Shown piece by piece: positions 41,504-47,500 of a DNA stretch of 64,000 nucleotides. The stretch comes from Glycera tridactyla. Its lineage: Eukaryota. The stretch covers positions 44,082,001 through 44,146,000 of the forward strand of contig OZ286461.1 of NCBI GenBank assembly GCA_965644265.1, in the 5' to 3' direction. Numbering within the stretch: the first letter of the stretch is position 1; every line of letters begins with the position of its first letter. The notes under the pieces were generated by a model that worked only from the letters and a program-made list of their open reading frames with translations, did not search any database and was not told the DNA's origin. The translations under genes and the position numbers were made by a program.

Positions 41504-44500
41504 GTATGAACATTTCTATTTTTCTCCAAATGAGTTCATTACTTTAGTCACCATGAGAGCTTAAGTCTGTCTGTATTCTCAGCTTTAGCAGAACTAAACC
41601 ACATCTCAGATAAGTTGGCTGTAAAGTAAATCTACCAAGTTGCTGGGGTGGATCCTTTCGATGCCAATATGCGGATTTTATGTAGATATTCAGGACTTGA
41701 TCTAGTGCAGAATTACTTGTCTTGGATATTTTTCGGAGTCCCATCATGATTGTTCTGCCAAGGGACATTTTCCATTTGCATCATTTCAGACCTTGAGCTC
41801 TTTCCCCACTAGTTGCTTGTCGCAGTACAATGGCATGAAGTGATGAAACAGTTTTCACGTTGGTCCGTGTTTATGACTTACTGATTTGAATTTCTGTTCT
41901 GATCAATGCACTGTGCTGTGTCCACTATATTGGTGCAATGAAAGAAAATCTTTGCAGTCAGAGAGGAGAAACTTCAGGACATGATGCACTGAGCAGGCGC
42001 ATCCTCTTGACACCTAACCTAGGCTTCCTGTAATCCCTGAGTTTCAATCTGTTGCGTTTGAAAATATAGGGGAAGTTTCTGGAAATCTGGTCACATTTCA
42101 GGAAATTCTGTTTTCAGTCCACTTGCATTGCTGACCAAGCAACTACTTATGCTTGTTTGCCAGAGATTCCACCTGCTATGATTTTTGGGTAGCAACTTCT
42201 CTTTTTTGGCCAAAATACTTGCATTATGAGTGATGCTACTCTGAATAAGTAGCATTTTTTCTTATCCCATTGCAAATACTAGCACTGCTATTATCTTAAA
42301 TTGGCTCTGCCACTATTTTTGTCCATCAGAGGTTGGCGTCTATGGGTAGCTCAATATCTGATTGAATATGTAGTAATATGCTCCATGTAAATGTCTGTCC
42401 AGACTCTGAGCACATCAGCTGTAATGCAGGAAATATCTGGGTTTATTATCCTGATTTGGTCAGTGGACCCTGGAGGGTGGGTGAAAATTTTACAACACCT
42501 GCTTGGATAACACCTTGGAAAAAAGTTTGAAGCCCTTCAGTTTCTTGATAATAGATGCACACACTGACCAGATGATGTGCTACTTCCACTGGAGCATTTG
42601 GCAATGGCTATTCAAGCAAACTGCAAACCTGAGCTGCCTTCACTTGTGAATGTTTTTGCCTTGGTGTCTTGCATGAATGGAGGTGATGATACAGTTTCAC
42701 GTTGGTCCGTGTTTATGAGTACTGATTAGTGTTCCTGTTCTGATCATGATTTTTGCATTTCACTTCAGTCGACATGTTTGACTTGGATGGTACCGTTATC
42801 AATGTCCTTCTTTAGTGATCGAGAGATGCCACATCAGTGTCGTCCTGAAATGACATGGTCCTTGAGAATTGTGTGAAATTACTACGTACAAGCAATCTCT
42901 TGCCTCCCAAATCCGAAAGTATGCTATTCGGATTTCATCCTAAACAGGGTTTGCTCAGACTCAGGAAATCATTACCTATACTGTCCTGGAAAACATGTTT
43001 TTCACTTTATTATTCTGGAAAAACACTGAAATTTTGAGATCTGCACCATGCTCTGGAGATCAGCAAAAACCTAGTAATTTCACTCATTTTTGATGGACGG
43101 TGCACACGGTAGACATCAATAGTTCTGATAGATCTCAAAATGACCACCAAGTTGTGCACAGGAAAAATCGTGATCACCATCATAATGGAGAATTTCAGAA
43201 GAGTAAGCTCAGTGGTTCAGACATACTACCTCTAGTCGCTGATGCTGCACATGTAAAATTACCATTAATTATGAGGCATTCATTTCGAAAACCATGAATT
43301 TATTGGTTGTGTGTGTTCTGGAAATTCTTCATGGCGTACTGGAAATGTTCTGGAATTTTTTTTTCCCACAAGAACCCTGTATGAACCATGCTGAAGAACT
43401 AGTTATTGCCATCCAGCTTCTGTCTTGGTTGTTGGATGGAAGGTATCTTCACTATTCTGCAGGACATCCATAGGAAGTTTGATACACTTGAAAAGAAAAT
43501 GGGTGAGGAATCACCTGAAATCTTGTGGGGGTTTCATGAATCATGATAGATACTTTGATGAAAATGTGGGACCAGTTTCGGTGAATTCATCCAAATTTCC
43601 AAAAAGAAGAATCATTTTGTTTACATCTGCTTGTCTATTCAGTTAGCTAGATCTTTGTCAGGACTCCTACAACAGTGAGTTTTCTTGTTCTTGCTGAGAC
43701 GGACCTCAACAAAGAGTAGTCGTGTAAGGTTGCTCGATTATCCATGGCAGGTACAGTTCAGTCTTGAATAGATTGGCTCATGTTGATTCAAAGGCCTCAG
43801 TCACTGGGAGAACGAAGAAATGTCTTATGTTCAAGCTCATAACCTGCTGATGAAGATTTTTTATTTTGCTGATACCTCTGATGGTTTTATCTGCTTATCA
43901 AATCTGAAGGTTTTGATGCTAACAGATACTTTTCTTCATGTCTGATTATGCATGCTTTTTCATTCATATGCATCTTCAATCACTCTCCCCTTAGTGACCT
44001 TGACAATTTTCACTTGTTTCTCAGGAAATCATTAAACAGTGGAGGGTAGCATAAATAGTACACTCCAAAAACTTATTGTAGTGCATGTGGGATCATGTCA
44101 TAGGTCACAGTCCTATTCACAAGACAGGTGTGCGAGGATGGCTGAAAGTCGACTGAAGAATCACACACTGCCTTCATGGATGAATGAGATCAGGAATATG
44201 CTGCATATTCCTTTGTTACACATTCCCTGTTAGTGAAGAAATTAGTTCCTGTTATTGAATAGAAGTATGAAAAGAAAATCGTTTTTGGGCTGGATGTAAT
44301 CCGATTTGTCTATTCCCAAAGAAGTAGTGGATGAGAAGATTGTTGAGATGCCAACCACTGTGATTCTGCAGTAGCAACTACTCTGGCCAAAATTCTTGCA
44401 TTCCACAAATTCACATGTGGATCTACACTGAAAAAAATCAGGATTTTCTTCATTCCATTGCAAATACTTTGACTGCTACTCTTTAAAACTAGCATTGCTA

Positions 44501-47500
44501 CTATTTTTGTCCATCAGAGAATGGGATTTATCGATCATAGTTGTAGATTCTTTTTGCCTAAGATTATATCATTTGTGTGCACCTATTTGCCTTTTTGCAA
44601 TTAGTTTCTCACATTTACACTTTTATCACCCCTTTTCACCCTGTTATATGCTCATGACCTAGTGATGAAGATTTTTGTTTTCACTGAACCTCTTGATGGT
44701 TTGTGGGTAGGGTGGGAGTCCAGGGTCTCTATAGATGGCAGCCACCGATGGGCGCGGGACATTACTCTGAAGTGTTGCCATCGGGGATGATGTGGCCTAG
44801 GTGTAGCATCATCCCTTCTCTTCTTCTCAATATCTTTTGGAATGGGGGGTTGAATGGAAAACATACCTTCAAAATTTTCTATCATCTATCTTTAGGCATT
44901 TTCTACCAAAATTGCACTATCACCAGATTTCTTTTTCTTGACCTCTTTCCTATCCCTCTAAGCTATTTCTTATTTCTTCAGTGAAATGGTCTCAGGTGTA
45001 GGTAGCTGATGGTTTGCCTGTAGCAGATATTGTCACTATGCAAAACGCGGGTACCAGGCACACCAGTTCTGGGTTACTAGGGCTGCGACTAGGTTTACTA
45101 GGTTGTGTGATGGCATTGTACTGCAAGCATAGGGCAAGCCATGATTGTAAAGCTGGTTCGAAGTTGACAGTTCGTAATTGAAGACATTGTTTGAGTATTC
45201 TCCGAACCTAATGCTTTTCCTTGTTTCAAGTACTGCGCTTTGCGTAAAAAAAAGCATAGCTATCAGGCTTGAGTGTGAGCTTCCAGCCAGTTACATAGTT
45301 AGATATGCCATCATCAGGTTCAATATGTCTTTTTTGTAGAGTTAGAGCTGGTAGGGGTGTGTCTGAACCATCAGCTACTTCCACTTGACAACCTTTCAGG
45401 GAGTTCCCCATCATCTTGTGTTCAGGGTTTGTGAGAGTGATGTCTTCAGGGGAGAGACCATCTAGCTTTCATTAACCAGGAACACACGGCATACATAATC
45501 CTGTGGGTTGATACATGCCGTTAAGCCTCAAACAAACAAACAAACAAACAACTTGATGGTTTATCTGCTTATCAAATCTGAAGGTTGTGATGCTATAACA
45601 ACATTCATCAAAATTAATGATCAATAGCTAGAACCAATATTTTAAAGGCTGTTCAAAGGTGCAGCTTGTGATAATAATTAAATTCTATGAGTCCGCTCAT
45701 GTATATGTATAGTTACCTGGGTGTTCAGGGTTTTCCCTGCTTGTCTGAGAGGCTTAGGTGGTACTGAGACATTATGATTATTTCAGAGGCTTGGTTCACA
45801 AATCCTAGATTCAAAGAAACATAAATATGGTGATTGTGCCCAGAAATGGCCCATATTAACTGAAAAATAAGGGGAACATAACATTTCTAGGTAAATGAGG
45901 CTTAGGTGGTGAAAACTCAGAGAAATAGGCTTAGGTGGTGAAGAAAAAGGCTTAGGTGGGCCGCCTAAGACTATATAGCAGGGAAAACCCTGGTGTTGTA
46001 GAGCGAGTCATCCTCATGGGCTGTCTTACATCGAACTCCCTAACTACTCAATGATCAGGTGATATTCAAGGCATCAACATTGAACTGAGTGCTATCTTGC
46101 CACTACAACATATTGAACTGGGTTCTTTTGGATCTACTGAAGGCAAAAAAAGAGCAAAATCGTGCATAATCAAGGTTAAATTTACCATGATGATTCAACT
46201 GGCAATGTGTTTCATGTACGTCATGGCATGTTTGTGGTATATGATTAGGGGGACCGAAACTCTGTATCAGGTACTTTCGAACTCTGATTGAATGTTCAAG
46301 CTCATAACCTGCTGATGAAGATTTTTATTTTGCTGATATCTCTGATGGTTTTATCTGCTTATCAAATCTGAAGGTTTTGATGCTAACACATTCTTTTTCT
46401 TTATGCCTGATGATATAGCATGCTTTCCCCTTTTATATATACCTAGTTTACATCTTTGATGCCTACCCACCTGAATATAAACCTCCTCAGGCAATATAAT
46501 GTATCTGCATAGGCAGGTGGGCATCTTCCCACACCTTTGAATGAGGACTGGTATACTTTTAATAGAGTGGCTATTGGTCTCATGAAAGTCAATCAAGATA
46601 GACCGCTTTCAGTTGCATCAAAAAGCGGTCTTTATAAGGTGGTCTTTATAGAGAGGTCATTTACTGTTGAGAATATTACCACGGTCGCAGCTCAGGGTTG
46701 TCTTTATAGGGAGGTGGTCTTTAGAGGAGGTTCAACTGTATTTGTATTATGATGCATGATATTGTTTGTAGGAATTCGAGATCATTGACTTCTTCCTGGG
46801 AACAGCACTGAAAGATGAGGTCTTGAAGATCATGCCCGTGCAGAAACAGACCCGTGCCGGTCAGCGCACCCGATTCAAGGCATTCGTTGCCATCGGAGAC
46901 TACAATGGCCATGTTGGACTTGGTGTGAAGTGCTCCAAGGAAGTAGCCACTGCTATTCGTGGAGCAATCATCCTTGCCAAGCTCTCGGTCATCCCAGTCC
47001 GAAGAGGCTATTGGGGTAACAAGATCGGTAAACCCCATACCGTACCTTGCAAGGTGGGTTCTCTTGCACAATTGTCCTATTCTATACACATACTGTTGTT
47101 GGACATCTGATACATGTTGTTGATATTACTCAAGGAACTGTGTGGTTGGGTCCTTCCGTGGTTGTCACACTGAATCATTTTTGCGGCAGAGGAAGACCGT
47201 GAAAACTAGCTGAGGTATGATGAGATAACATCACGTTGGTCCGTGTTTATGATTCATCATGATCAAACTTGTTAATCTGATCTCAGCACTCTTCTGGAAA
47301 TCCTGGTTAGATGGTAGCAATAGATCGATTCTCTGGCAAACCTGTGGACCCTGATGGTTAACGGTGTTAGTCTTGATACATGAATTATGTACTGTATCAC
47401 AATACTAGGCATTCACAACTATCTCATATGCGATGAGGGATCTTCAGAAGCAATGTCTAATGAGCAATTGTAGAGGCTTTTTGAAGTCAGGATCAGTCAA

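Follow-up and report, generated by a model that had tools for sequence, protein, structure and literature searches.

Three copies of a small nucleolar RNA (snoRNA) of the box C/D class lie in the first intron of the ribosomal protein gene RPS2 of Glycera tridactyla, on contig OZ286461.1. The window is the whole stretch of 64 kb that was analysed; coordinates are window positions, and no runs of N were encountered. The joint made by removal of the intron, 41503 to 46772, is present in the contigs of all four public transcript runs at a depth of 284–5171. The exons flanking it translate to RPS2/uS5, with protein matches carrying PF00333, and exon 2 fixes the host gene on the plus strand. RPS2 is among the most highly expressed genes, and all three snoRNA copies are sense-oriented within its intron 1, which is the animal mode for C/D snoRNAs.

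Anatomy of the snoRNA copies

Exact matches to the 14-mer TCTGCTTATCAAAT number three in the window (43890–43903, 45564–45577 and 46354–46367), all of them on the plus strand. Each has a CTGA D box immediately 3′ of it, as an earlier note on this DNA had claimed. Because these occurrences are embedded in homologous plus-strand blocks of ~100 nt, they are copies and not chance matches. The earlier note had also counted three members of a family, in which the D′ guide varies. The count stands in part, since copies 1 and 3 are intact whereas copy 2 is split by an insertion. The variation of the D′ guide is real but modest: copy 2 differs at several positions, and copies 1 and 3 are nearly alike. 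The family consists of two intact genes and one pseudogene (Table 1).

Copies 1 and 3 show the complete box C/D anatomy, namely C, D′, C′ and D boxes and a 5 bp terminal stem (AACCU/AGGUU). An outer stem of 7–8 bp is possible in the snoRNA copies. The D′ spacer of the two intact copies is 14–15 nt long and U-rich, the linker between D′ and C′ is 6 nt, and the spacer between C′ and D, including the guide, is 19 nt. The nucleotide 5′ of UGAUGA in the C box is C, where the RUGAUGA consensus has a purine. Within the snoRNA, only the length of a T-run, by a single T, and a C/T difference in the D′–C′ linker distinguish copy 1 from copy 3. Over ~135 nt, flanks included, they are 92 % identical and are therefore recent duplicates.

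Table 1. Positions of snoRNA copies and other features in and around intron 1 of RPS2
Feature	Position	Strand	Details
Copy 1, complete box C/D snoRNA	43841-43912	+	72 nt; sequence, crude C/D scan
Copy 1, terminal stem	AACCT 43841-45, AGGTT 43908-12	+	5 bp
Copy 1, C box	43848-53	+	TGATGA
Copy 1, D′ guide	43854-68	+	U-rich
Copy 1, D′ box	43869-72	+	CTGA
Copy 1, C′ box	43879-84	+	TGATGG
Copy 1, D guide	43885-43903	+	core 43890-43903
Copy 1, D box	43904-07	+	CTGA
Copy 2, 5′ part	44656-44702	+	stem GACCT, C box TGATGA, diverged D′ guide, D′ box CTGA, C′ box TGATGG
Dispersed repeat splitting copy 2	44703-45551	+	849 bp, (CAAA)n tail; non-LTR (long terminal repeat)/SINE (short interspersed nuclear element)-like retroposon
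Copy 2, 3′ part	45552-45586	+	
Copy 2, target-site duplication	45552-45562	+	CTTGATGGTTT
Copy 2, D guide	45563-45577	+	ATCTGCTTATCAAAT
Copy 2, D box	45578-81	+	CTGA
Copy 2, terminal stem, 3′ side	45582-86	+	AGGTT
Copy 3, complete box C/D snoRNA	46306-46376	+	71 nt; sequence, crude C/D scan; D′ guide one T shorter than in copy 1
Copy 3, D guide core	46354-46367	+	
Copy 3, D box	46368-71	+	
RPS2 intron 1	41504-46771	+	5,268 nt, GT..AG; spliced joint
RPS2 exon 2	46772-47056	+	95 codons, Ribosomal_S5 domain
U18-like snoRNA	41835-41906	+	RPS2 intron 1
U18-like snoRNA	42677-42747	+	RPS2 intron 1
U18 (SNORD18)-like snoRNA	47209-47287	+	RPS2 intron 2; Rfam SNORD18, 40.3 bits (gathering score 41)
U18-like snoRNA	47781-47861	+	RPS2 intron 2; SNORD18, 34.6 bits

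Copy 2 is interrupted just 3′ of its C′ box, at 44702. The 849 bp element found there is flanked on both sides by a perfect 11 nt target-site duplication (TSD), CTTGATGGTTT, at 44692–44702 and 45552–45562. Elsewhere in the window the element has a copy at 61561–62281 (81–87 % identity) and a tail fragment at 47959–48041, and its contig depth in the transcript runs rises to 271,009. It is a dispersed retroposon whose insertion inactivated copy 2.

Predicted target in large-subunit rRNA

An anchor sequence lying a short way downstream of the predicted target in the large-subunit (LSU) rRNA retrieved 91 eukaryotic ribosomal DNA (rDNA) loci from metagenomes. One of these, L077, is of human-gut metagenome origin and possibly human rDNA; it was left out, and the remaining 90 loci (479 kb) were scanned. 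In every locus, the stretch of 14 nt preceding the anchor terminates in UUUUGGUAA. The LSU segment UUUGGUAAGCAGA, which the earlier note had cited, is real and is invariant in all 90 loci.

This segment is by far the best rDNA partner of the D guide (UCUGCUUAUCAAA) in the 479 kb scan, in 90 of the 90 loci. The duplex comprises 13 bp at guide positions 2–14 with a single G-U pair, at guide position 6, and so bears out the pairing of 13 nt with one G-U that the earlier note had put forward. All other rDNA candidates require 3–5 G-U pairs or are confined to single loci. When guides were shuffled, 2 of 1000 reached 13 bp on one rDNA unit. The duplex energy is −19.1 kcal/mol versus −19.7 for a hypothetical Watson–Crick pair at the wobble, a cost of 0.6 kcal/mol. 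Box C/D guides have at least 10 nt of complementarity to rRNA or small nuclear RNA beside box D or D′, with position 5 on the target; here there are 13 bp. By this D+5 rule the guide selects the first G, which is the nucleotide that had been named. It precedes the G of the anchor by 5 nt and the A of GCAGA by 7 nt. From the sequence of U38 and the 10 nt spacing to Cm1868, we take the A of GCAGA to be the U38/snR61 site.

A perfect complement of the D guide (AUUUGAUAAGCAGA; ATTTGATAAGCAGA) is absent from the 64 kb window and from the 479 kb of rDNA of the 90 eukaryotes. For the D′ guide, the best candidate target was the 3′ end of 18S rRNA, GGAAGUAAAAGUC, with 11 bp including 2 G-U pairs. It was rejected as unconvincing because the nucleotide that would be methylated is in one of the G-U pairs and because copy 3 alone has a matching register. 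The U-rich D′ guide is probably without a target.

Relationship to known families

No Rfam 15 family matched the window at gathering thresholds. With expectation values (E) of up to 10, the best Rfam matches for the copies were to snoMe28S-Cm2645, at 28.8 and 28.4 bits (the latter for copy 1) versus a gathering score of 48. Further matches below threshold were to SNORD60 (27.5 bits versus 42) and SNORD36. These sub-threshold alignments cover the boxes and the linker, with the guide excluded. By Rfam score the copies fall in no known family, in agreement with the earlier description of the family as unassigned.

SNORD38 (U38), yeast snR61, AtU38 and Drosophila snoRNA:CD16 are likewise C/D guides acting on the same LSU segment (..GGUAAGCAGAACUGG..), and are intronic in animals. 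The new snoRNA differs from them in selecting the G that lies 7 nt upstream, in having the guide before box D and in lacking Rfam similarity; neither SNORD38 nor snR61 gave an Rfam match at E up to 10 over 43000–47500. Assignment to SNORD38/snR61 also fails on the target nucleotide, since guide position 5 pairs with the first G in UUUGG and not with the A of GCAGA. In U38 the guide precedes D′, and we take U38 and the new snoRNA to share the rRNA pairing stretch GGUAAGCAGA.

Selection and relatives

Copy 2 was aligned to copies 1 and 3 after removal of the insertion and of one copy of the TSD. The 38 nt that run from the C′ box through the terminal stem contain 0 substitutions and one indel in a T-run. 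In the D′ guide and linker, ~8 of 26 positions are changed relative to copies 1 and 3 by hand count (Fisher p = 3.5e-4 against 0/38), and the flanks of copy 2 are unalignable beyond ~12 nt. Judged by eye, a possible outer stem has changed on both sides with pairing kept (CATAACCT/AGGTTTTG in copies 1 and 3, CATGACCT/AGGTTGTG in copy 2). The pattern, seen in a single old paralogue, is as for a functional D guide accompanied by a free D′ guide, and suggests that the D guide was under past selection.

Relatives were sought with the exon 2 peptide alone, which was searched against a protein collection and led to eleven RPS2 loci of other species (L092–L102). Eight were compared in detail, the remainder being near-duplicate places, and exon 2 identity to the eight is only 77–82 %. 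A crude C/D scan of the RPS2 loci of three relatives (L092, L096 and L097) gave no candidate.

Methylation maps at the predicted site

For yeast and human, no 2′-O-methylguanosine (Gm) is known at this G from the standard site lists, as the earlier note had also stated. The tables of 2′-O-methylated nucleotides (Nm) of Drosophila, Arabidopsis and Dictyostelium likewise show no Gm at 7 nt upstream from the U38-type A (PMC11014333, PMC8583080, PMC8817022). The comparison of maps takes in these five species. A literature search for Gm1864, G1864 and Gm1851 returned nothing relevant.

The U38-type A itself, as 2′-O-methyladenosine (Am), is yeast Am1133, which is equivalent to human Am1858 or Am1871 depending on the numbering scheme, Arabidopsis Am1140/Am1143 and Dictyostelium Am1370 (PMC8583080, PMC8817022). 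Drosophila Am1347 has a universal conservation code (PMC11014333) and is, by our reading of that code, the U38-type A. There was no Saccharomyces-like LSU 5′ end among the rDNA loci, and the numbering therefore rests on published equivalences and the standard site lists. We take the predicted G to be yeast G1126 and human G1864.

The Nm map of the fly contains eight Drosophila-only sites, for example 28S-Am1117, Am2724 and Cm3298 (PMC11014333 Table 1). The guides of such sites resemble the snoRNA described here in being canonical C/D, often multi-copy, and directed to single-lineage Nm beside conserved ribosome-core sites (PMC11014333). Measurements by RiboMeth-seq and Nanopore underlie the Drosophila-only sites (PMC11014333), whereas the site here is only predicted.

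Neighbouring snoRNAs and repeats

Four U18-like snoRNAs are also found in the introns of RPS2 (Table 1). In all four the D′ box is AUGA, not CUGA, after the conserved guide GGUCCGUGUUU, and all score just below the SNORD18 threshold. Those in intron 2 have 7 bp terminal stems in the crude C/D scan. Intron 1 therefore holds five snoRNA genes, two U18-like and three of the new family (one broken), and intron 2 (region 47057–48500) holds two more that are U18-like. Like the new family, the U18-like C/D snoRNAs occupy introns of this host on the same strand and have been multiplied by local duplication. They differ in their guide, GGUCCGUGUUU, which serves the U18 A site, and outside the boxes they have no similarity to the new family. 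The vertebrate host of U18 is RPL4. It is unusual in animals for one intron to hold several snoRNAs, and trimming of the lariat would not by itself suffice to release them. Such a layout is known in host genes of fly and rice; here the host is a ribosomal protein gene.

Several other repeats were noted in the region. A SINE-like repeat of ~150–180 nt is represented by at least 8 copies or fragments in the window; the copy at 46591–46771 abuts the 3′ splice site of intron 1, and other positions are ~3185–3328, 18398–18542, 21685–21819, 34078–34196, 49131–49236 and 49974–50102. Its contig depth reaches 49,050. An element at 45726–45992 resembles a miniature inverted-repeat transposable element, with perfect 16 nt terminal inverted repeats (CAGGGTTTTCCCTGCT/AGCAGGGAAAACCCTG) separated by 235 nt and four copies of GGCTTAGGTGG inside. 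A segment of 170–180 nt occurs twice in intron 1 (42163–42331 and 44345–44519) with ~70 % identity, and its order with respect to the snoRNA copies is the same both times. The repetition suggests that intron 1 grew through duplication of a larger unit.

Interpretation

With the anatomy, the host intron and its expression, the complementarity to an invariant rRNA segment and the pattern among paralogues as observed, we infer a stable mature RNA, its assembly into a small nucleolar ribonucleoprotein (snoRNP) and methylation. It is with moderate confidence that we regard the copies as paralogous genes of one intron-encoded C/D snoRNA in RPS2, the D guide of which directs fibrillarin to an LSU G. 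The snoRNA would be trimmed from the intron after splicing, protected by the C/D kink-turn and the terminal stem, and would assemble with fibrillarin, Nop56, Nop58 and Snu13. The guide upstream of box D would pair over 13 bp with LSU UUUGGUAAGCAGA, so that the first G, opposite the fifth guide nucleotide, would enter the methyltransferase site and become a Gm, 7 nt 5′ of the U38/snR61 Am, which is universal. More tentatively, the lineage may add a Gm to the invariant LSU UUUGGUAAGCAGA, unlisted in the maps of five species, by means of a young, locally duplicated snoRNA that overlaps the U38 binding site.

Several points weigh against this main reading. The G-U pair adjoins the target nucleotide in every copy, and such a wobble may lower efficiency or may point to another target. 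The predicted rRNA pairing was scored on the rDNA of other eukaryotes. Several snoRNAs in one long intron, with copy 3 ending 395 nt ahead of the 3′ splice site, do not correspond to the processing layout favoured in mammals. Copies 1 and 3 are recent duplicates, and for this reason their identity is uninformative on selection. No orthologue was found, the compared RPS2 loci having an intron 1 of ~300–990 nt or none and no guide-like motif. With the first intron short or missing in the other loci, and the guide missing too, the position of the snoRNA in RPS2 is lineage-specific. Intron coverage in the transcript runs is ~1/1000 of exon depth. A low-depth contig of run X1 spans 43700–43921, and hence copy 1; however, the expression data are assembled contigs of poly(A)-type runs, which cannot resolve RNA ends or small RNAs, and the contigs give no read-level evidence of a ~72 nt RNA. 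It is because of the wobble beside the target, the crowded intron, transcript data confined to contigs and the failure to find orthologues that the main reading is not rated more highly.

The wobble is also the starting point of the alternative that survives best, although we consider it unlikely: a real, expressed C/D snoRNA acting on another substrate with the perfect complement AUUUGAUAAGCAGA, such as a pre-rRNA spacer, small nuclear RNA, tRNA or mRNA, or binding LSU as a non-methylating chaperone or competitor of U38. With a perfect 14 nt complement, the U at guide position 1 would be paired and the wobble would give way to a regular pair, and, going by the U38 guide, the binding site overlaps that of U38. 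However, neither the window nor the rDNA holds such a complement, and the energetic cost of the wobble is slight. The LSU match also stands out from shuffled guides and falls on an invariant, modification-rich segment.

Somewhat less probable again is that the copies are decaying or never-functional relics of intragenic duplication, left unprocessed, with an rRNA match that has no present function. One of the three has already been destroyed by a retroposon, the intron is crowded with repeats, and neither mature RNA in the contig data nor orthologues in other RPS2 loci speak for current use. Decay of this kind is difficult to reconcile with copies 1 and 3, which retain every box and the terminal stem, or with the old paralogue, in which the D-guide half is unchanged while the rest has diverged; expression of the host is also high. 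Finally, a diverged member of a named family, either of U38/snR61 type with its guide slid along the same rRNA or an invertebrate family under another name, is improbable, for although the rRNA stretch is that of U38 (the shared GGUAAGCAGA) and sequence is a poor means of recognising short C/D families, the best Rfam matches are limited to boxes and linker with none to SNORD38/snR61, the selected G lies 7 nt from the U38 A, and the guide stands before box D rather than before D′, where we take that of U38 to be.

Significance

The snoRNA of RPS2 intron 1 can credibly be added to a known class as a new, lineage-specific member. In an unstudied phylum, such a snoRNA and a newly predicted site are to be expected. 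Lineage-specific Nm guides are usual, and thinking on how box C/D guides work is unchanged. The locus shows snoRNA birth, by tandem duplication in a host intron, beside snoRNA death by retroposon insertion. Were the proposed Gm and the overlap with U38 to hold true, the new snoRNP and the U38 snoRNP would have to take turns on one stretch of pre-rRNA. A real methylation would mean that a core segment of the LSU, conserved universally, has gained a lineage-specific 2′-O-methyl, and the snoRNA and its target would be among the first such pairs in a phylum for which snoRNA data are almost non-existent.

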